A DNA stretch of 64,000 nt from Octopus sinensis (Eukaryota): the NCBI RefSeq assembly GCF_006345805.1, contig NC_043011.1, positions 22,208,464-22,272,463 of the forward strand, written 5' to 3'. Every line of letters begins with the position of its first letter. Position 1 is the first letter of the stretch. The notes under the pieces were generated by a model. That model saw nothing but the letters and a program-made list of their open reading frames with translations, had not been told where the DNA came from and searched no databases. Below are positions 2,732-58,170 of the stretch, piece after piece. Both the position numbers and the translations under genes were made by a program.

Positions 2732-2879
2732 ATGCCGCTGGTTATTCTATGTGGTTTGCCTTGTTCGGGCAAATCGACCGTTTCCCAGTCACTGGCTTCA
2801 TACTTCCAAGAACAGTCTAAGAATGTGGACATTATCAGTATCCATTCCGTTGGGTTGGATAGGAATTCATTATTTGCTG
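2732..2879 (+). CDS. KTI12: KTI12 coding exon 1 (start codon, P-loop GLPCSGKS)
   Basis: Translates MPLVILCGLPCSGKSTVSQSLASYFQEQSKNVDIISIHSVGLDRNSLFA, matching the Kti12 N-terminus (MPLxxxCGxPxSGKS). Ends at donor G|gtcagt, phase 1, completed by exon 2 (G+AT = Asp). Confidence 0.95.
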
Positions 2880-8530: not shown

Positions 8531-11500
8531 TAACTGTTACAGCAAGGTTATGGTGAGTGAACTTCTTGGATGATTTAGAGCGATGAGCTTTTGGTTGTGT
8601 ATGGGATGGAGAGGGATAGGTGCCGTGTAGTGGGATTGAAACCAGAACTATGTGATTAGGAAACAAACATGGTTCTGGGTTCATGCAGTGGGTTTCAATC
8701 CCAGAACTAAGTTTGCTTCCCAATCACATGGTTTTGGGTTCAGTCCAACTGCATAGCATCATCAAGTGTCTCTCATTATAGTCCTGGGCTGACCAAAGCT
8801 TTATGAGTGGATTTGGTAGATGGAAACTGAAAGCATACACATATATATATATACACACTTCATTTTTGTATTTGGTTTGCAAGATTCTTGTGAAATTGTG
8901 TGCCAACAATAATAATCACACACTGGTTCAATATCACTTTATTGTTTAGTCAATTGGTTAAATATCTAACCGGTTAACTAATTGATCATTTGTCTAATGT
9001 GTTGGTTAAAAAAAAACGATTGATTGTTTAAACTACACATTAAACAAATGATTGATTAATTAGTTGGTTAGATAAGTAACCAATTCACTAACATTAATGA
9101 AGTGATATTGAACCAGTGTGTGTGTCTATTATTGGCATTATGACCTTCCCAAGATATTGAAATATATATATATATATAAGCAATTATGGGGATAAACAAA
9201 TTAGATATTAAATATATTAAATACATCAAATACAAAATATGTACATATGTATACATATGTACATATGTACAACAAGAAGTGGAAACTTTCAGATGATTAA
9301 TTTACATGTATAATTATATATAGTTTTGTACTCTGTGTAATGTTATTGCACAAAGTATGAATGGCAGAGAAAATTAAAGTGGCGGAAAAAAAAGGTATTA
9401 TATATATATATATATATATATATATTTCGGAGATGTACTTGCATAGCGAGTGACTTGATCTGAGATCGTGTGCTGGAACAAAAACAATTGCAGCACAATA
9501 TATATATATTATTTAACGTTTGTTTTCCATTATGGCATGGGTTGGATGGTTTGTCAGGAACTGGAAAGCTGGAGAGCTGTACCAGCCTCCAATTGGTTGT
9601 TTTTCATGCCCTTCCTAACGACAACCACTTTACAGAATGTACTGGGTGCTTTTTATGTGTCACCAGCTCAGTGGTGTTGTTGAGTAGTGTAGCTTACAAG
9701 CTGAGAGGGGAAGTGCAACGAAGGAAGGTGACTATGTATAAATATAAATATATATATATATATATGTGTGTGTATACATAAATATATATACTTGCATACA
9801 TAAAGAAGTGCTGATCACTTAAAGTGGATGGAACTTGTGGAAGAGGGAGACCCAAGAAGACATAGGATCAAGGCTGATCTCAAAGCACTAATACTCACAA
9901 AAGACTGAGATACCAGGCAACTTTCTATATTCATGGAGACCTGCCCACTACAGCATAATTGATATCCTAAAAGCACCTTGGTAATGCATGTCCATGAGGG
10001 GCTCTGCCCTGTCAACCTATTCCCCAACTCGCATTTCCTCCCCTAACACCCATCACTTCCTCTATTACCTGAGAGCAGAATAGCTACATACTACACCCCT
10101 TGCTTTCTTAGTTACCTTTCTTCCCCTACCTACTGTCTCTACCAATCACTTCCTTTCTGCATCTTTTCTCTCCTCCCTGTGCTGCACTCCATCATCAACT
10201 CTCCACTTACCTGCTATCATCCTCAGTGCCATCACATATCTACTGCAATCCCCACCCCTGAACCTCTCCTACATTTCTCTCCAACGTTTGCTACCTCATC
10301 CTGCTCACTCATCCAACCCAAGCCTCTCTATCACTTCACCAATTCTCACCACTCCCAATGTCCCTTGTGGGCATATTCCAACACATCTCCACCATCATCT
10401 CTCTCACTATCACTCTCTGTATCTTACTCTCCTTTCTACTCCACAGCAAGACACTTATATTTACCCCTCTATACCTTAACTCAACTGGCACAAACCCACA
10501 CCCACTAAATACTACTCCTCATTCGTAGTCAAGGCGTTTTGTCTTGCAAGGTCCCTGATGACTCTGTCAGTACTGGTGCTGGTGCCATATAAAAAGCACT
10601 GATGGTGGTTGGCATTAAGAAGTACATCCAGCAAGTAGAAACCATGCCAAAACAGACAATGGAACTCGGTATGTCTCCTGGCCTTGCCAGCTCCTGTCAA
10701 ACTGTGCAGTCCATGCTAGCATGGAAAATGGACGTTAAATGGTGATCACACTTGTTTGTGTGCTTGATTATGTCACTTTGTCTTGACATTGCATGATAGT
10801 TTTAAAATAATTGTCATTGCTAGACAAGCTGTGTCACTTGTTTCCAGTACTCTGTGAGAACATGGGAAAATATTAGCTTACATGGAAACAGGTGAGGCAA
10901 TTCATTGGTTAAAATTCGAAAAATTAAACTACGTTAAACAAACAAATTACAATTTTCTCAAGAAAGCCAAGAGAAAAAAATGTTTTATTTTGACACATTC
11001 TACCAGTATACGAAGTTTCAAAGTGTTTAGTTAACTAGAAATTGTGTTGACATGTGCCATTCAAAAGGAAAAGATCCAAATATTCTTATTAAAACAGCAC
11101 ACTATAAGTTTGTTGATGTGCATAAAGCTTGGTTAAGCTAGAATTAAATTATGCTTCACAAAGCAACATTGAATAGAATATGTTCATATAAAATCTTATT
11201 TAACATAATTCAAGTGCATTTGGACTTGAGAAGGCCTGCTGCTATGGAAATAGTACTAAGAGAAAATTTGTAGCTGGTGAAGCAAAAAGACACAGAAACA
11301 CATGCATTGTACAATCCAGTGATGCCATTCACAGCTGAAAATGTGTTGTTACATATGTTTAAGAGAAGTTTCTCTTACTCTTGAATTCCTCTTCAAGATA
11401 TTCCCACTACCATCATTGCTTTAATACTGTAATCAAATATTATCAGAACTGCACATTTTAGCATTTCACTGTTATCTGTCATTTTATGACATGGTCTTCA

Positions 11501-12252
11501 CCCACATTTTATATTGATCACCCTCCCCTATTCACTATATCTGCCCCCTCCCCCTTATGATTTACCTAATCAAATGTTTCCCTCTCTCCTTTCCACCCAT
11601 CTCTTTCTTCCTTTGTCTACTCTATTATTATTATTAGTAGTAGTATCATTCTCTACTCTCTTTTCTCATTCCTCCTCCTTACCCCCTCAACTCTACCTAA
11701 TTTCTTCAGTTGTCAGTTACACTTCACTCTTCCCCACCTCCATCTACTTATCACTCAATTCATGTTCTTGATAATATTCACTCACACCCATTTCCTATTT
11801 CTCACTTTCCTATACACTCTTCAATCTCTACTCACCCACACATTTTGTTTGTTCCCATGCCCTACTCAACTTCTACACACTTCGCCTTGAGGATCCATCA
11901 TGACACCCATCACCACCATCTTTCTCTCTTTCCAGTTTCACCCCAACCACTCCTGACTTTGTTCTATAATATTTGCAGCTGTGTAGCTTCCCTACAGCAA
12001 GAAACATATTGTGTTCTGGCCCTTCCTCTCTCCCTTTAACCCTTCCACACATAGCATAGAGTCACTTCCCTCTCTATTGTGGCTCCACTCAGTCAAACAG
12101 GATCTTGAACTTGCAGCGTACATGGTGACCTCACTAGCATTAGTAACATGAAAAAGCACCCAAGTAGTTAGCATTTGAAAGGACATCCAACACTAGAAAC
12201 TATGCCAAAGCAGAAATTGATACACAATGCAATCTTCAGGCCTGACTCAGCC

Positions 12253-12310
12253 TGTCAAACTGTCCAGCCTATGCCAGCATGGAACATGGATATTAAATGA
12301 TGATGATATG

Positions 12311-12361
<51 letters not shown>

Positions 12362-12595
12362 TATATGTATAATATGTATGTGTATACACATTCATCTATA
12401 TACATATGTTTGTGTATGTGTATATATATATATATATACATACATACACAAACATATGTATATAGATGAATGTGTATGGTGTGTGTGTATACACATACAT
12501 ATTATACATATATGTATATATTATATATATATATATACATATCATCATCATTTAATATCCATGTTCCATGCTGGCATAGGTTGGACAGTTTGACA
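12253..12595. repeat. Near-perfect 343-bp palindrome (inverted duplication of an RTE tail plus microsatellite)
   Basis: Left arm TGTCAAACTGTCCAGCCTATGCCAGCATGG... is the reverse complement of the right arm ending ...GGTTGGACAGTTTGACA; the centre is a (TA)n run. Confidence 0.9.
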
Positions 12596-13169
12596 TACAT
12601 ACATATATATATATACACACACACACTCACATGTATCTGTATATTTGTATATATATGTGTGTGTGTGTGTACACACACACACATATTTTTGGGGTCAGTT
12701 TGTCTTCATGACATGTTCTGTCGATCTCTCATGATGAACCTGCCTGTGGCCTCAATGATAACCTCTAGGCGACCTCAGAACTGGCTACCATCACTTCACT
12801 AACAATTCTGCTAGCTTGCTGCCTTTCCAATAATAATAATTGCTTCTGATTCCAGTTCAAGGCCAGCAGTATTACTACTGTTGATGTCCTCCATCAAGGT
12901 ATTGTCTATGGTTTTGCACACCATTGATTCTCTTATGTGTCAGTTCCCAGGTGATGGCTTAGCTAATGAGCAGCTCTGGGTGTCTTAGGCAATGCTTGAC
13001 AGTTTAAACCATCTTCCTTTTGATATCAACATGCCTGAGACCGCCCTATATCTGTAATACAAACTTCTTGTTCTAAAGTAATCTAAATTAAGGTCTTCCA
13101 TTAAGATTTCATGCTAATTTATGGATCTTCCAAACACCAGCTTAATAATTATAGTTCTTTTACTAAATA

Positions 13170-13576
13170 GGCGTAGGAGTGGCTGTTTGGTAAATAGTTT
13201 GCTTGCCAACCACATGGTTCCGGGTTCAGTCCCACTGCGTGGCACCTTGGGCAATTATCTTCTACTATGGCCTCGGGCCGACCAAAGCCTTGTGAGTGGA
13301 TTTGATAGACGGAAACTGAAAGAAGCCTGTCGTGTATATGTATATATATGTGTATGTTTGTGTGTCTGTATTTGACCCCCCCCCCCAACATCGCTTGACA
13401 ACCGATGCTGGTGTGTTTACGTTCCCGTAACTTAGCGGTTCGGCAAAAGAGACCAATAGAATAAGTACTAGGCTTATAAAGAATAAATCCTGGGGTCGAT
13501 TTTCTCAACTAAAGGCAGTGCCCCAGCATGGCCACAGTAAAAAATGACTGAAACAATTAAAAGAGTAAAGAGTAAA
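13170..13576 (+). mobile_element. tRNA-derived SINE (family A), full length
   Basis: Head GGCGTAGGAGTGGCTGTTTGG with B-box-like GGTTCAGTCCC, body GTGAGTGGATTT..AGACGGAAACTGAAAGAAGCC, internal (TA/TG)n and tail GACTGAAACAA..AAAAG; about 15 full or partial copies in the window. Confidence 0.85.
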
Positions 13577-13641
13577 TTCTTCAAAATTTATTGAAACAGA
13601 AGTAGTGTGTTTAATCAGAAATATGATATAGAAAAAGTCAA

Positions 13642-14030
13642 GGCGCAGGAGTGGCTGTGTGGTAAGTAGCTTGTTTACCAACCACATGGTTCCGGGTTCA
13701 GTCCCACTGCATGGCACCTTGGGCAAGTGTCTTCTACTGTAGCCTCGGGCCGACCAATGCCTTGTGAGTGGATTTGGTAGACGGAAACTGAAAGAAGCCC
13801 GTCATATATATGTATATATATATATGTGTGTTTGTCCCCCTAGCATTGCTTGACAACTGATGCTGGTGTGTTTATGTCCCCGTTACTTAGCAGTTTGGCA
13901 AAAGAGACCGATAGAATAAGTACTGGGCTTACAAAAGAATAAGTCCCGGGGTCGATTTGCTCGATTAAAGGCAGTGCCTCAGCATGGCCACAGTCAAATG
14001 ACTGAAACAATTAAAAGAGTAAAGAGTAAA
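13642..14030 (+). mobile_element. tRNA-derived SINE (family A), full length, in tandem with the previous copy
   Basis: Same architecture; flanked by a direct duplication of at least 68 bp of non-SINE sequence. Confidence 0.85.
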
Positions 14031-14844: not shown

Positions 14845-16208
14845 TTAAACTTGATGTAGAATAAAATTAGTTTATAGCATGGAATTTTCTACAAGTCATG
14901 CCACTGGAAGTGAATTGACTGGTTTTCAACAGTCAGTCATGTGGCTTGCTGCAAGTAGTTTAGAATTTTTAAAAAGGCAAACTGGACTTAATTACAGAAA
15001 AACTAATCTTTCTTAAATAACTTCAGTTACTGTTTGGTTAAAACGTTAAAAAATGTCTAAATTAGTAAAATACAAGAATACGTGCTTTTATTGTATGTTT
15101 ACTCATGATACTGATAATCTCACCACTTGTTGCAGTCATCTCTTTCATGAGGTTTAAGCCTTTTACTGCTTTCCATGTCTTCTTCGGGTTCCTTTCACAT
15201 GGATTTCTTGGTACTTCTTTATAAAAACTCTACTTTCATAGATATCACATCTGTGCCAGTGCAGTCTTCTCTCTTGCACAATACAGCTGATTCCTCTTAT
15301 ACTCAGCTTCTCTCTCATTTCATTTGTGCACCATTTTTTTATTCTCACATTTTAGGTGTAGGTGTGACTGTGGTAAGAAATTTGTTTCCCAATCACATGG
15401 TCTTGGGTTCAGTCTCACTCCATAGTACCTTAGGTGTCTTCTGCTATAGCCCTAGGCCGACCAAAATCTTGTGAGTGGATTTAGTAGACGGACACTGAAA
15501 GGAGCCTGTTATATGTATACGTGTGTGTGTGTGTGTGTATTACTGTCTCCTTTTCTTGACTTCATGTGATAGTTGTAAATAAATGTCACCATCATATCCT
15601 TTGTTTCCAGTCTTCTGTGAAAGTATGTCTGTTCATGGGGAATATTACTTTACTTGGAAACAGGTGAGGGTTGGTGATAGGAAGGGCATCTGGCCAGAGA
15701 AGATCTGCCTCAACTAATAGTGTCTGACCTATGTAAGCATGGAAAAGAGGGCATTAAAAAATAATGAATTATGCATTTATTACAGTGTGCTTGTCTCATT
15801 TCTTTCTAGCCTTCATATATCCTGACTGGCTCTCGTGCCGGTAGCACATAAAAAGCACCATTCAAGCGTGATCGATGGTAGTACTGCCTGACTGGCCCCT
15901 CATGCCGGTGGCATGTAAAAAGCACCCACTACACTTTCGGAGTGGTTGGTGTTAGGAAAGGCATCCAGCTGTAGAAACCTTGCCTGATCAGATTGGAGCC
16001 TGGTACAGCCTTCCGGCTTGTCAGTCCTTAGTCAAACCATCCAACCTATGCCAGCATGGAAAGCGAACATTAAACAACGATGATGATGATGATTCAGTGT
16101 CATGTTTTGCTACCATGGAATGTCACACTTCTATAAACATAATTATAAACAAATATACAAACACTAGACTATATATTTTTGCTAATATTTATTTATTTTA
16201 TTTTATAG

Positions 16209-16260
16209 ATTCCATGAAAGAAAGAGAAGCCAGAGGTTTACTCAAATCTGCTGTCCAAAG
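16209..16260 (+). CDS. KTI12: KTI12 coding exon 2
   Basis: Acceptor ttttatag|, translates (D)SMKEREARGLLKSAVQ(R), matching the Kti12 DSxxEKxxRGxLxSxVxR helix; donor AG|gtaata; phase 1 in, phase 2 out. Confidence 0.95.
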
Positions 16261-24540: not shown

Positions 24541-24593
24541 ATCTATTTCTAAGGAATATGTTACCATACTTGATGCTATGAACTACACTAAAG
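24541..24593 (+). CDS. KTI12: KTI12 coding exon 3 (ILDxxNYxKG motif)
   Basis: Acceptor ttttatttag|, translates (R)SISKEYVTILDAMNYTK(G); donor AAG|gtgagt; phases compatible with both neighbours. Confidence 0.95.
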
Positions 24594-30441: not shown

Positions 30442-31265
30442 GTATGTGTGTGTATGTGCAAGTATATATGTGAATATACACTAGATGTACGCATGACCCA
30501 TTGGGTCACAACCACTCCAAGTTCAAAATGTCAATGTGTGGTGGCAAATGAAAAAATAGTATTTCGAACTTCATGTTATAAAATTCTTAAATAATAGTTC
30601 TGTCTTTAGTGCAACAACATAAACACACGCCCACGTGTTTATTCTTTGAAAACATGCAAATGGCCTTCAAATTTTTTTCCTTGCTTTGTTCTTTGCTATT
30701 CTTTGTTACTATTGCAAGTGAAATACACGGGTACTTCAGCATTAAGTAATGTTTTTGCAAAGTCATCATTGGTGCACAATGAAAAGAATTCTGTCAGTGT
30801 TGTTCTCATATGTCATTCATTGACAGCTCTGTATATCCTCACTATTTCTGAGCAATATCCTTTGTTCATCTGGAACTTGCAGTTTCACTATTGCAGGTGC
30901 TCTTTCATGAATTGAAATGAATTGAAATGGATGCAACTGCTTTGGATGGTCCAATATACCTACCCATTAGATATTGACTAATTTTGTTATCATTGTTTAT
31001 TTGTTTAGCAGCTTGGTCATTACCTTTCAGTGTGTACTTGATGATGTACTTAATTGACCTCACCGAGGCAATGATTTCAACGTTGCAGTGGCATTTGAAT
31101 GCTCTTCAAAGAGTTTCATTATGAGCTACAACCCATTTGCTGCTTGTTTTTCCATTCTTATGAGATTCAACTCCTCCCATTGCAACTGATCTTTGTCTAT
31201 AAAGTGATAATCTCTCTGTCTGTTTTTCTACCTTTTTGATTAAGATGATAAAGATTAATGTTTTA

Positions 31266-43292: not shown

Positions 43293-43348
43293 GATTCCGC
43301 TATGAGCTGTATTGTGTTGCTAAGTCAAGTTCCACACCTCACTGTGTG
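43293..43348 (+). CDS. KTI12: KTI12 coding exon 4
   Basis: Acceptor ttttcatag|, translates (G)FRYELYCVAKSSSTPHCV, the canonical GFRYELYC motif; donor GTG|gtgagt. Confidence 0.96.
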
Positions 43349-50045: not shown

Positions 50046-50125
50046 GTGTACTGTGCAGCTAACCTGCAACAGTGCAGTGAATGGAACAAGAATAGGCTAG
50101 AATCGGAACAGTATTCTGAAGATAT
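50046..50125 (+). CDS. KTI12: KTI12 coding exon 5
   Basis: Acceptor ttttttaatgtag|, translates VYCAANLQQCSEWNKNRLESEQYSED(I) with the WNxxR motif; donor AT|gtaagt. Confidence 0.93.
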
Positions 50126-52426: not shown

Positions 52427-52586
52427 ACTTGAACAACTTGCTCAATGTTTGGAAATGCCCAGTTCTCAGACTCGATGGGATAGTCCTTTATTTGTGATTC
52501 AAAAAGGAGATGAATTACCAAAGCAGAAAATTGCAGATGCTCTATTTTCTCGAAAGGCTCCACCTCCAAATATGTCAACACAATCA
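52427..52586 (+). CDS. KTI12: KTI12 coding exon 6 (RWDSPLF, APPPNMSTQS)
   Basis: Acceptor aatttcag|, translates (I)LEQLAQCLEMPSSQTRWDSPLFVIQKGDELPKQKIADALFSRKAPPPNMSTQS; donor TCA|gtaagt; partly seen as ORF 52449-52682. Confidence 0.96.
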
Positions 52587-53283: not shown

Positions 53284-53346
53284 CAACCTTTGTCATCAAC
53301 AAATTTTCTCTATGATCTTGATTGTGTGACAAATACTACAATAAAA
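53284..53346 (+). CDS. KTI12: KTI12 coding exon 7
   Basis: Acceptor ttctttttcag|, translates QPLSSTNFLYDLDCVTNTTIK (Kti12 QPLxxxxFLxxLD motif); donor AAA|gtaagt; phase 0/0. Confidence 0.95.
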
Positions 53347-53404: not shown

Positions 53405-54375
53405 TGGTGCTGGTGGCACGTAAAAAGCATCAACCGAACATGGCCAATGCCAGTACTCACTGACTGGCTCCCATACTGGTGTCACATAAAAGGCACTATC
53501 CAAATGTGATTAGTGCCAGGACTGCCTGACTGGCCCCCATGCTGGTGGCACATAAAAAGCACCATCTGAACGTGGCCAATGCCAGTACCCTCTAACTAGC
53601 TCCCGTGCCAGTGGCACATAAAAAGCACCATCTGAACGTGGCCAATGCCAGTACCCTCTAACTAGCTCCCGTGCCAGTGGCACATAAAAAGCACCATCTG
53701 AATGTGGCCAATGCCAGTACCCTCTAACTAGCTCCCGTGCCAGTGGCACATAAAAAGCACCATCTGAACGTGGCCAATGCCAGTACCCTCTAACTAGCTC
53801 CCGTGCCAGTGGCACATAAAAAGCACCATCTGAATGTGGCCAATGCCAGTACCCTCTAACTAGCTCCCGTGCCAGTGGCACATAAAAAGCACCATCTGAA
53901 CGTGGCCAATGCCAGTACCCTCTAACTAGCTCCCGTGCCAGTGGCACATAAAAAGCACCATCTGAATGTGGCCAATGCCAGTACCCTCTAACTAGCTCCC
54001 GTGCCAGTGGCACATAAAAAGCACCATCTGAACGTGGCCAATGCCAGTACCCTCTAACTAGCTCTCATGCCAAGGGCACATAAAAAGCACCATCTGAACG
54101 TGGCCAATGCCAGTACCCTCTAACTAGCTCCCGTGCCAGTGGCACAAAAGAGCACCATCTGAATGTTGCCGATGCCGGTACTCCCTGACTTGCTCCTGTG
54201 CTGGTGGTACGTAAAAAGCACCCACTATACTCTCAGGATGGTTCGCGTTAGGAAGAGCATGCAGCTGTAGAAACATTGCCAGATCAAATTGGAGCCGGGT
54301 GCAGCTGCTGGCTCTCCAGACCTCAGTCAAACTGTCCAACCCATGCCAGCATGGAAAACGGACGTTAAACAATGG
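53405..54375 (+). mobile_element. RTE LINE 3'-end copy with an expanded 66-bp minisatellite, filling most of KTI12 intron 7
   Basis: About 10 homogeneous 66-bp units from 53545 (period exactly 66) plus 2 older units, then the conserved tail to GGACGTTAAACAATGGTGATG. Confidence 0.85.
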
Positions 54376-54451: not shown

Positions 54452-54520
54452 ACAATTATGCAAGCTCAGAGTTCGAGTGTCCCAGGAGATCAATTTACTA
54501 TTCCAGGAGTGGAAGAGAAA
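54452..54520 (+). CDS. KTI12: KTI12 coding exon 8
   Basis: Acceptor ttttttccatcag|, translates TIMQAQSSSVPGDQFTIPGVEEK (AQxxxVPGD motif); followed by the U12-type donor GTATCCTTTT. Confidence 0.94.
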
Positions 54521-56848
54521 GTATCCTTTTTCTGTTTTAATCATTTTTTGTTGGTTTCAGTCAGTGGACTGTGGCCAAGCTGGAGCATGACCTCAAGAGT
54601 TTTGAAGTTAGTGCGCCTGCATGGCCACATGGTAATATTGATCACAGTACTTAGATACTCGTTTATTAAATGGCCGTGTTTACTTATTGAGCTATTCTCT
54701 TTTAGAGAGTTACCTTCTTTTAAAGATTAAATAACACAAGGAGTTTATACAAGTATATTCACATCACTATATACATTATATACACATTACTAGTATACAT
54801 ACATACACTCTTTGGAGGGAGTAAATACCAGGAGTTTATGCTAGTATAGACACACTTGCATATACAAATGTATATGATAGTTGTTTTTTGCCTGCTTTTT
54901 CCATAGTGGCATGTGTTGGATGAGACTTATCAAGATAATATACACCAAGCTGTCCTTGTCAACAACCATTATCAATTTATTTAATCCTTTAGCATTTAAA
55001 CAGGCCATATCTGGCCCCAAAATTCTACCTGTTTTATGTTCAAACTGGCCAGATCCTGCCTCTCACACCTATCCTACAATATCATTCTAATAATATATAC
55101 AACCAGATCTTCAAAAAAAAGTTGTGGGATAATAGATTATTAATTAAAAACAATGTGATTAATTAAGCATTACAGTTGATAAAGCAATCTGAATGCTAAA
55201 GGGTTAAAATATTTTTATTCTGCTGAACTTCATTATGCTGTAATCATTGAGCTACAAAATGTATCATTTACTGGAAACGTAAACCCAGTATTCTTGTTAC
55301 AAGGTGTCAGTATGAAGATGCAGAAATAGTCATGTCAGCACATCCATGGACAAAGACATGTACACACAGTGTCTGTGTGTGTGCATATCTCTTTCTCTCT
55401 TTCTCTTGTTTCAGTCATTTGACTGCGGCCATGCTGGAGCACCGCCTTTAGTCGAGCAAATCAACCCCGGGACTTATTCTTTGTAAGCCCAGTACTTATT
55501 CTATCAGTCTCTTTTGCCGAACCGCTAAGTGACGGGGACATAAACACACCAGCATCGGTTGTCAAGCAATGCTAGGGGGACAAACACAGACACACAAACA
55601 TATACACACATACATACACATGTATACATATATACGACAGGCTTCTTTCAGTTTCCGTCTACCAAATCCACTCACAAGGCATTGGTCGGCCCGAGGCTAT
55701 AGCAGAAGACACTTGCCCAAGATGCCACGCAGCAGGACTGAACCCGGAACCATGTGGTTGGTAAGCAAGCTACTTACCACACAGCCACTCCTGCGCCTAT
55801 ATATATATATCTGATAGACTTTTATACTGTTTTTTATTTACCAGTTTCACTCACAAGACATTGGTAGGCTTAAAGCTACATTAGAAGAATCTTGACACAT
55901 GGCCAAAGTTCCATGCAGTGGGATGGAACTTGAACCCACATGGTTATAAAGGGAACTGCAATACCACACAGCCATGCCTGTACCATGTGCACACACACAC
56001 ACACACACATACATGCATGTACATGATGGATTTGTGGGAAGAAACTTATCCATCCATTTGTTTTAGTAAAAAAATGGAATCTGACTGAACCAGCATCCTC
56101 TATGGGAAGAACACATTGTGTAGTTGTTTACCATTGCAGACTATTTAGAAGGTAAATTATATAAAGATGGGATGTATGTTTATGTGTTTTCAACTTGTGT
56201 TGAAGATTATTCTGAAAAATCATGTTATTGGACTAAAATCTTCCTTTTGTTGAACCTCATAGTGCTTTCTCTACTACAGTTGCTAAAAAGTCAGTATTAG
56301 ATTTGATGACATGAAAGATACATAAGCAAAAAAGATGCACCCCAATATCAGCTGTACATATCCAGTGTTGGGGACAAAATTAATTTGTGGGACTCAGGGT
56401 GTTTTTTTTTTTTTTGAAGACATTATTTTAGAAAAGATGTATATCTTAGACACTATTACGTAAATATAGTGTTTCACTTCCCATCACCTGTGTTGCAAAA
56501 AGACATGACTAGTTTATGTATCTGTAAATAAGCACCTTATGCAGAAGTATTTTATAATTGATGACTTGCAGAGCTTCGATTTTTCCTCGTGATTGGACAA
56601 AGTAATAGAAAACCACTCTAGTATATTCAAAAGAGCCTTAAATTACACTGAGATGAATTCTTTAGTTGGTCCCTTTTTAAAATTTTTATCTGGAACATAT
56701 TAATCAGAATTTATTTACTTCCTAGTCTCTCTCTCTCTACATAATTTGATTGTTTTCTTGCAATTATCATATTCTTTTGATCTGTGTGTTATTGCTATTT
56801 ACTGAAGATTAAATATTATAGTGATTATTAAATTCCTTAACAATCCAG
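54521..56848 (+). other. U12-type (minor spliceosome) GT-AG intron, KTI12 intron 8
   Basis: 5' site GTATCCTTTT; branch site TTCCTTAAC at 56833-56841; 7 nt AATCCAG to the acceptor with no polypyrimidine tract; the join keeps the reading frame. Confidence 0.93.
55404..55797 (-). mobile_element. tRNA-derived SINE (family A), full length, inside the U12 intron
   Basis: Reverse complement of the family A sequence GGCGCAGGAGTGGCTGTGTGG...GACTGAAACAAG. Confidence 0.85.
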
Positions 56849-56992
56849 ATAGTATTTAATCGTCACCTACCATTATCAGAACTACAGCGGTACAGACGAC
56901 AGTTTATTACTTACACAAAAATGCATCCTGTTGAAGATACGAAGAAACTTTCTTGTATGTTTGTATCATATCTTAATAGTTATATTAGTTGA
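56849..56992 (+). CDS. KTI12: KTI12 coding exon 9 (terminal, C-terminal tRNA-binding domain)
   Basis: Translates IVFNRHLPLSELQRYRRQFITYTKMHPVEDTKKLSCMFVSYLNSYIS*, matching Kti12 ELxRxRRQFIxYTKMHP...MFxxYL; TGA at 56990-56992. Confidence 0.96.
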   Translation: MVFNRHLPLSELQRYRRQFITYTKMHPVEDTKKLSCMFVSYLNSYIS

Positions 56993-57037: not shown

Positions 57038-57739
57038 GATATGGAAAATAATTTTGATTTTGAGTCTAACGTATTTATGAGTGTTTGTTTCTGGACATGT
57101 ATTGTCATAGCTTTTACATCTACTTTTACCTCACTGGCTTGTTTTGGATGAGATTTCTTACAGCAGTATTTTACAGCTAGATACCACCAATAATTACTTG
57201 TTTACATGTAAGTTACTATATTCGATTATCCTCTATGTTGAACTGACTGCTGAGTTGTGGGTTCTATTGTTTATGTAGGACCTAAACAAACAACATCAAA
57301 TAGTGTCAACACAAAAATGTGAGCACAAACACATACATACATTTTCCTGAAGTGCCACAAGCTTCAAATCTCTTGCTTGTGAAGAGAATTTTTTAACTAC
57401 ATAACCACTAAATTCTATTCACAAAGCAGCCTGAGGTTGTAGTAGAAGTTATAAGGATGTAATGCAGTGGGATGGGACCCACAACTACACAGCCCTGCAT
57501 GTGCCTACTATCTTTAAAATAGGGATCACATGTTTTAAGACTAAGATCTCTCCCAACACACAATATACTTTACAATATAAGTAGGAAACTCTAACTATAA
57601 ACTCAATTTGATGCATTGAACAGCTGATGATGCTCCCAAACTTATAACATAGGAAAGGAGTGTTTCTTAAGACTATTTGTGAAGTACAAGCAAAACTTGT
57701 GAATGGAAAAAAGTGACACATGGAAATGGAATGGTACTC

Positions 57740-58170
57740 TGCTGGTAACAAAGGGCCTTTCACTCAGAGTGTATGATGCATGTGTGCGAACAGCCATGCT
57801 ACATAGCAGTGAAACATGGGCTGTGACTGCTGAGGACAGGAAGAAATGAAGCTAGTGTGGCCCACTGGATGTGTAATATCAATGTGCATATACGACAGAG
57901 TGTAAGTGCCCTGAGAGAAAAGTTGAAGATAAGAAGCATCAGATGTGGTGTGCAAGAGGGACGACTGTGCTGGTATGGTCATGTGCTGCATATGGATGAG
58001 TACAGCTGTGTGAAGTAGTGTCACACTCTAACAGTGGAAGGAATTTGTGGAAGAGGTAGACTCAGGAAGACATGGGATGAGGTGGTGAAGCATGACCTTC
58101 GAATGTTGGGCCTCACAGAGGCAATGACAAAGACCGAGACCTTTGGAGATATGCTATGATTGAGAAGACC
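57740..58170 (+). mobile_element. RTE LINE ORF C-terminal fragment
   Basis: Translates YDACVRTAMLHSSETW..LREKL..RLCWYGHVLHM..EGICGRGRLRKTWDEVVKHDLRMLGL with stops and frameshifts. Confidence 0.85.

Follow-up and report, generated by a model that had tools for sequence, protein, structure and literature searches.

The last intron of the KTI12 gene of Octopus sinensis (intron 8) is very probably a genuine U12-type GT-AG intron that was inherited from an AT-AC U12 intron already present at this codon boundary in the plant-animal ancestor. The intron lies within a 64,000-nt stretch of genomic DNA (the window), in which the original prediction had placed a minor-spliceosome intron in front of the terminal exon of KTI12. 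Because other animals as well as a plant have an intron at the same site, we regard it as an ordinary inherited U12 intron with no octopus peculiarity. The shared alignment column and phase, together with the intron types listed in Table 2, indicate that the intron predates the split between plants and animals and that its termini were altered in molluscs; the ancestral state was inferred from one plant and one cnidarian genome.

Gene model and splice signals of intron 8

The KTI12 gene, made up of nine exons with eight introns between them, lies on the + strand at positions 2732-56992 of the window (Table 1). Exons were searched for with a P-loop scan and tblastn leads, followed by database proteins of Octopus bimaculoides and Argonauta hians, and the exon boundaries were set by exact spliced mapping of proteins onto the DNA. 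A human KTI12 query provided exon leads only and was superseded by the database proteins. The spliced product of 274 amino acids does not differ at any residue from XP_029646112.1 (O. sinensis) or CAI9736215.1 (O. vulgaris); because of this identity, the 54520->56849 junction is the publicly annotated one. The product matched the Pfam KTI12 profile (PF08433) at 301 bits vs. a cut-off of 22, with residues 1-270 aligned to profile positions 1-271 of 271. The P-loop ATPase motif GxPxxGK[ST] is present as GLPCSGKS at residues 8-15, and no second one was found in the six frames of the window.

Like the KTI12/DRL1 family (PSTK-like Elongator cofactor), the octopus protein carries the P-loop, a full-length profile match and a conserved C-terminal RRQFITYTKMHP segment, and it resembles the Chaetomium Kti12 NTD (6QP0) and PSTK (3A4L/3ADB). 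It shares about 50% identity with other metazoan KTI12 proteins and is itself ordinary. What distinguishes the octopus gene from the family is that it has been drawn out over 54 kb by introns rich in repeats. Three retrotransposon-looking ORF pieces downstream of KTI12 gave no match in Pfam.

Table 1. Positions of KTI12 exons, intron 8 signals and other features in the window
Feature	Positions	Strand	Basis or remark
KTI12 exon 1 (start codon, P-loop GLPCSGKS)	2732..2879	+	P-loop scan, spliced mapping
KTI12 exon 2	16209..16260	+	tblastn lead, spliced mapping
KTI12 exon 3	24541..24593	+	tblastn lead, spliced mapping
KTI12 exon 4	43293..43348	+	tblastn lead, spliced mapping
KTI12 exon 5	50046..50125	+	tblastn with O. 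bimaculoides and Argonauta proteins; boundary mapping
KTI12 exon 6	52427..52586	+	spliced mapping
KTI12 exon 7	53284..53346	+	spliced mapping
KTI12 exon 8, ending ...GVEEK	54452..54520	+	spliced mapping
Intron 8, U12-type GT-AG subtype, 2328 nt, phase 0	54521..56848	+	signals, mapping, homology
U12-type 5' splice site GTATCCTTT	54521..54529	+	fits /[AG]TATCCTT
First in-frame stop upon intron 8 retention	54728..54730	+	after 69 unrelated codons, exon 9 missing
MITE-like insert, 230-bp, 17-nt terminal inverted repeats (54980-54996 / 55192-55208)	54976..55208		inverted-repeat search, repeat copies
SINE-like interspersed repeat, ∼410 bp	55389..55803		window copies
Partial second copy, 3' part of the ∼410-bp repeat	55839..55980		window copies
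U12-type branch-site motif TTCCTTAAC	56833..56841	+	fits TCCTTRAY
3' splice-site AG	56847..56848	+	direct reading
KTI12 exon 9 coding part, 47 codons + TGA (56990-56992)	56849..56992	+	spliced mapping, Pfam
Possible alternative acceptor AG, 4 nt into exon 9 and 11-12 nt past the branch adenosine	56851..56852	+	frame-shifting if used

Intron 8 follows the codons ...GAA GAG AAA, opens with GTATCCTTTT and ends with ...AAATTCCTTAACAATCCAG; exon 9 then opens with ATA GTA TTT at 56849. Seven nucleotides (AATCCAG) separate the branch-site motif from exon 9, and the acceptor is CAG. The donor, the branch site 7 nt before the exon, phase 0 and the absence of a polypyrimidine tract, all named in the original prediction, were confirmed by direct reading and spliced mapping. 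The candidate branch adenosines (56839/56840) are located 8-9 nt before the last intron base. The usual branch-to-acceptor spacing of U12 introns has its optimum at about 11-13 nt, and the spacing of intron 8 is at the short edge of the U12 range. The short spacing evidently works, since the Argonauta intron has an identical one. The branch motif of intron 8 also falls within the region of -55 to -5 in which intronIC searches for branch sites (PMC7367187).

The donor of intron 8 matched the U1-complementary consensus at 4/9 positions, compared with 6-7/9 for introns 1-7. The latter, whose donors are GT[ACG]AGT-like and whose acceptor regions are T-rich, are U2-type as had been proposed. The branch motif is itself the longest run of pyrimidines near the intron 8 acceptor, and there is no separate tract. 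Since the pyrimidine fraction in this region (0.59) is equal to that of intron 4, the missing polypyrimidine tract is a true yet weak discriminator.

Motif counts were rejected as evidence, because each motif by itself is about as frequent in the window as expected by chance: RTATCCTTT gave 5 matches vs. 2.0 expected, and TTCCTTRAY gave 5 vs. 3.9. The joint chance of finding both motifs at the ends of any of the 8 introns was estimated from these window expectations at ∼6e-8. With the counts alone near chance, the significance comes from the placement of the motifs on a junction that is fixed by homology.

Intron 8 shares with U12-type GT-AG introns the /GTATCCTT donor, the TTCCTTAAC branch site near the 3' end and the lack of a polypyrimidine tract, and like U12-type introns it stands single among U2-type neighbours. 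Unlike typical introns of the class, it is in phase 0, has a short branch spacing and is the last intron of its gene. Phase 0 had been described as under-represented among U12 introns; it is the minority phase but is not rare, accounting for about 22% of minor introns on average (PMC10639083).

The KTI12 terminal intron in other animals and a plant

To compare the site among species, we collected the genomic loci of 12 other KTI12 genes and placed the annotated protein of each on the corresponding DNA by exact spliced mapping. The Limulus junction was set by hand from tblastn and the sequence (AT-AA termini). Plant proteins were retrieved from the database with an Arabidopsis DRL1 query, which was used as a lead only. 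Introns are present within the KTI12 coding sequence of 11 of the 12 genes, the exception being the crucifer Cochlearia. MAFFT alignment placed the last intron at column 246 in phase 0 in all 11 intron-bearing relatives as well as in the window gene. It is U12-type in 9 of the 11 other intron-bearing genomes, six of these having AT-AC or AT-AA termini (Table 2).

Table 2. Signals and class of the last KTI12 intron in the other intron-bearing genomes
Genus	Donor	Branch site or tract	Termini	Class
Argonauta (octopod)	GTATCCTTTT	TTCCTTAAT	GT-AG	U12
Haliotis (gastropod)	GTATCCTTCC	TTCCTTATT	GT-AG	U12
Mytilus (bivalve)	GTATCCTTTT	TTCCTTAAC	GT-AG	U12
Limulus (chelicerate)	ATATCCTTTA	TTCCTTAAC	AT-AA	U12
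Diadema (sea urchin)	ATATCCTTGC	ATCCTTAAC	AT-AC	U12
Ptychodera (hemichordate)	ATATCCTTTT	TTCCTTGAT	AT-AC	U12
Lepisosteus (gar)	ATATCCTTTG	TGCCTTAAC	AT-AC	U12
Porites (coral)	ATATCCTTTG	TTCCTTGAC	AT-AC	U12
Ananas (pineapple)	ATATCCTTTT	ATCCTTGAC	AT-AC	U12
Liolophura (chiton)	GTAAGT	Y-tract	GT-AG	U2
Lingula (brachiopod)	GTAACA	Y-tract	GT-AG	U2

The donor GTATCCTTT is identical in Argonauta and Mytilus, and GTATCCTT is found in Haliotis too. The introns of Ptychodera, Lepisosteus and Diadema have ATATCCTT and CCTTRAY in common, and the gar gene has the complete nine-exon structure together with its AT-AC intron. In pineapple and animals alike, the conserved EL(Q/R)R.RR.F segment is located exactly ten codons downstream of the last intron. 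Four further intron positions are common to pineapple and animals in the same phase, and one more is at the same column with a one-nucleotide offset. The window and Argonauta introns are similar only over their first ∼10 and last ∼21 nt, and these stretches correspond to the two signal blocks. The U12 donor and branch consensus is, judging from these alignments, held by selection.

Conservation of the intron's position and class in other invertebrates had been put forward as a check, and the same column and phase were indeed found in all intron-bearing species sampled. The proposal that KTI12 depends on the minor spliceosome "in this lineage" did not hold, as the intron is also U12-type in a gar, an echinoderm, a hemichordate, a chelicerate, a coral and a monocot. 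From its distribution, the dependence of KTI12 on the minor spliceosome appears to be an old default state and no cephalopod feature.

A U12-to-U2 class-conversion model has been described, in which phase-0 U12 introns are said to convert most readily (PMC7367187). All three states of this model, AT-AC, U12 GT-AG and U2 GT-AG, are seen at the KTI12 site, in the order that the model predicts. The switch from AT-AC to GT-AG would have taken place on the branch to gastropods, bivalves and cephalopods, and the chiton and the brachiopod would represent the U2-type end state. In humans (retrogene) and in a crucifer (intronless coding sequence) the U12 intron would have been lost outright. Octopus sinensis is among the species in a comparison of minor-intron conservation, in which molluscs are relatively enriched in minor introns (PMC10639083). 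Seen against the class as a whole, we rate a U12 intron in octopus as routine on its own.

Splicing of intron 8 and its significance for the KTI12 protein

In splicing of the U12 class, U11 and then U6atac pair with the donor and U12 pairs with the branch site, and the acceptor is chosen by proximity. At the intron 8 donor, U11 and later U6atac would pair with GTATCCTT, and U12 would pair with TTCCTTAAC with the branch adenosine bulged. The nearby CAG would be picked by proximity, a polypyrimidine tract not being needed for this step, and splicing would join ...GVEEK to IVFNRH..., by which the protein gains its last 47 residues. The ATAG at the start of exon 9, which contains the alternative AG listed in Table 1, is also found in Argonauta and Haliotis.

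Exon 9 alone matched positions 234-271 of the Pfam KTI12 profile, and it includes ELQRYRRQFITYTKMHP with R241/R243/R244/K251. The yeast residues R281, K283, R284 and K291 are located in helix alpha-10; when they are substituted together, tRNA binding, interaction with Elongator and U34 modification are all abolished (PMC11995267; see also PMC6511879). The octopus residues have the same spacing as the four yeast residues (0, +2, +3, +10), and the conserved basic patch of exon 9 probably corresponds to the tRNA-binding residues of alpha-10, a correspondence drawn from residue spacing (PMC11995267). The description of exon 9 as the C-terminal tRNA-binding exon is overstated: the exon supplies only the last 47 residues of a domain that, by our own estimate, seems to extend across about exons 6-9.

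A protein made from an intron-retaining transcript would be without the exon 9 segment and is probably inactive. Since splicing by the minor spliceosome would supply the last 47 residues and the retention product is probably inactive, octopus is expected to need the minor spliceosome for productive KTI12 expression; the same is expected of most animals and of at least one plant.

A further-reaching reading, which we consider unlikely, is that intron 8 acts as a regulatory gate: slow or conditional minor splicing would limit the amount of full-length KTI12 and thereby tune Elongator-dependent U34 modification. Retained transcripts would then be held in the nucleus or give rise to a truncated protein. 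The persistence of a U12-type intron at one site from plant to vertebrate, despite a phase said to convert most easily (PMC7367187), is in favor of such a gate, as is the position of intron 8 before a segment likely essential for tRNA binding. Retention of a last intron also leaves no downstream exon junction, and the transcript may therefore escape nonsense-mediated decay. On the other hand, the site has turned U2-type in the chiton and Lingula and has been erased in human and crucifer with the gene kept; because conversion or erasure took place without loss of KTI12, the coupling is dispensable. In addition, much of the retention of minor introns is ascribed to neutral processes in a survey of over 3000 genomes (PMC10639083). 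It is improbable that the terminal intron is one of few minor introns to have been kept at a single codon boundary since the plant-animal ancestor because minor-spliceosome activity sets the level of full-length, tRNA-binding KTI12 and thereby of Elongator-dependent wobble-uridine modification. If this were true, the link would have been broken only by retrocopy replacement (mammals, crucifers) or U2 conversion (chiton, brachiopod).

It is very unlikely that the major (U2) spliceosome, or either of the two machineries, removes intron 8 and that the U12-like motifs are relics. The GT-AG termini of the intron would be compatible with such removal, two lophotrochozoans have a U2-type intron at the site, and some introns with U12-like motifs are reported to be spliced by both machineries (PMC10853781). 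However, the donor agrees poorly with the U1 consensus, and a pyrimidine tract other than the branch motif is missing. The full U12 motifs are conserved in a gastropod, a bivalve and two octopods and the remainder of the intron is not; relics would have decayed. An artefact of the gene model, with the true junction elsewhere and the motifs coinciding by chance, is hardly conceivable and effectively refuted: each motif taken singly is as frequent in the window as chance would have it, but splicing at the junction yields exactly the proteins annotated in two Octopus species, the Pfam profile fits without a gap, the column is that of the last intron in 11 other genomes, and the estimated joint chance of both motifs is minute (∼6e-8).

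Intron loss in human and crucifer genes and inserts within intron 8

Human and Arabidopsis, the latter a crucifer, are the usual reference species for minor introns. As both the human gene and the coding sequence of the sampled crucifer are intronless, KTI12 would be expected to drop from human-Arabidopsis minor-intron comparisons. The human gene had been described as intronless, and the literature agrees: it is a single-exon orphan retrogene nested in a TXNDC12 intron (PMC3548309, PMC5408686). Human and octopus KTI12 share the orthologous protein function but differ in gene structure, and because the human gene has a single exon, all eight ancestral introns are gone from it, the U12 one included.

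In a literature search we found no paper naming KTI12 together with U12 or "minor intron", and no relevant paper linking DRL1 with U12 or minor introns with Elongator. Kti12 is not in the searched supplements of PMC7367187 and PMC10639083. Octopus intron 8 has almost certainly been scored already and passed over without comment, since O. sinensis is part of a genome-wide intronIC analysis (PMC10639083). The course of a KTI12 minor intron from AT-AC U12 to GT-AG U12, then to U2-type and finally to loss may be read at this single site. KTI12, and by way of it tRNA wobble modification, is a candidate downstream target of minor-spliceosome defects in fish, echinoderms, molluscs and non-crucifer plants, and one that human-based gene lists would miss.

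Intron 8 is 2328 nt long in the window vs. 321 nt in Argonauta. The MITE that had been proposed within it is supported by the 17-nt terminal inverted repeats, which show 94% complementarity, and by five more copies in the window (72-81% identity, both orientations). SINEs had been proposed as well. A SINE is a short interspersed repeat with a pol III head (tRNA-, 5S- or 7SL-derived). The ∼410-bp element is clearly an interspersed repeat, with >10 copies or fragments in the window, the best at 13641-14026 (87%) and 13164-13572 (85%), but a tRNA-like head was not detected: ARAGORN gave 0 hits in the intron, and an Rfam gathering scan gave 0 hits in the whole window. Because no such head was detected, SINE is a plausible label only. 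The inserts identified cover only part of the length difference from Argonauta, and the size of the octopus intron is due at least partly to transposable-element insertions away from the splice signals. Such inserts are routine, since repeats reportedly make up about 66% of the O. vulgaris genome (PMC13282606).

Acceptor region of the U12-type intron and its termini elsewhere

Exon 9 of KTI12 begins with ATAG (window 56849-56852), which places a second AG 4 nt past the annotated acceptor of intron 8. This second AG lies 11-12 nt from the branch adenosine of the intron vs. 8-9 nt for the annotated acceptor, and the longer spacing is nearer the U12 optimum. Use of the exon 9 AG (56851-56852) as acceptor would shift the reading frame. 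The ATAG is also found right after the acceptor in Argonauta and Haliotis KTI12.

The orthologous U12 intron of Limulus polyphemus (positions 10900-12418 of its KTI12 locus, L006) has AT-AA ends (ATATCCTTTAC...TTCCTTAACTTCTCTTAA), and no shift of the junction yields canonical ends. An error in the assembly could explain the AT-AA ends, as could a non-canonical U12 boundary of a rare kind. Matches to the donor-like motif ATATCCTTT were also detected in U2-type introns of the window KTI12 (see table), in numbers compatible with chance.

Intron positions and gene size

The intron preceding GYRYEL is in phase 0 in pineapple (Ananas comosus, locus L011) and in phase 1 in 10/10 animals; its position is otherwise common to pineapple and animals, with an offset of one nucleotide. 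Ananas comosus KTI12 is without animal introns 2 and 7 and carries two introns of its own, and Porites KTI12 has one additional intron.

The same nine-exon gene spans ∼54 kb in the window (2732-56992), 12.9 kb in Argonauta hians (locus L001) and ∼3 kb in Lingula (locus L004). Introns 1 and 3 of the window gene reach 13.3 and 18.7 kb, respectively. The tandem repeat in intron 7 was first seen through recurrent spurious tblastn matches on the minus strand. The 5' exons seem to be absent from the Octopus bimaculoides KTI12 models, probably because of very long introns: in XP_014780799.1 exons 1-3 are replaced by an unrelated N-terminus of 78 residues, and the X2 isoform has just 135 residues.

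Sequence features within and downstream of KTI12
Feature	Sequence	Position	Strand	Location
ATATCCTTT match	window	15594-15602	+ (coding)	intron 1 (U2-type)
ATATCCTTT match	window	30855-30863	+ (coding)	intron 3 (U2-type)
Tandem repeat (66-bp unit, 12.3 copies, 90% identity)	window	53413-54222		intron 7
Three adjoining ORF pieces	window	57703-58156	+	∼0.7-1.2 kb 3' of the stop codon
HBS1-like translational GTPase gene	Argonauta, L001	16162-16883	minus	downstream of KTI12

Sequences downstream of KTI12

The three ORF pieces downstream of the window gene (e.g., ...GRGRLRKTWDEVVKHDL...) gave no match in a Pfam search; their resemblance to a non-LTR retrotransposon, in the C-terminal tail of ORF2, is putative. 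At the Argonauta locus, the HBS1-like gene is convergent with KTI12.
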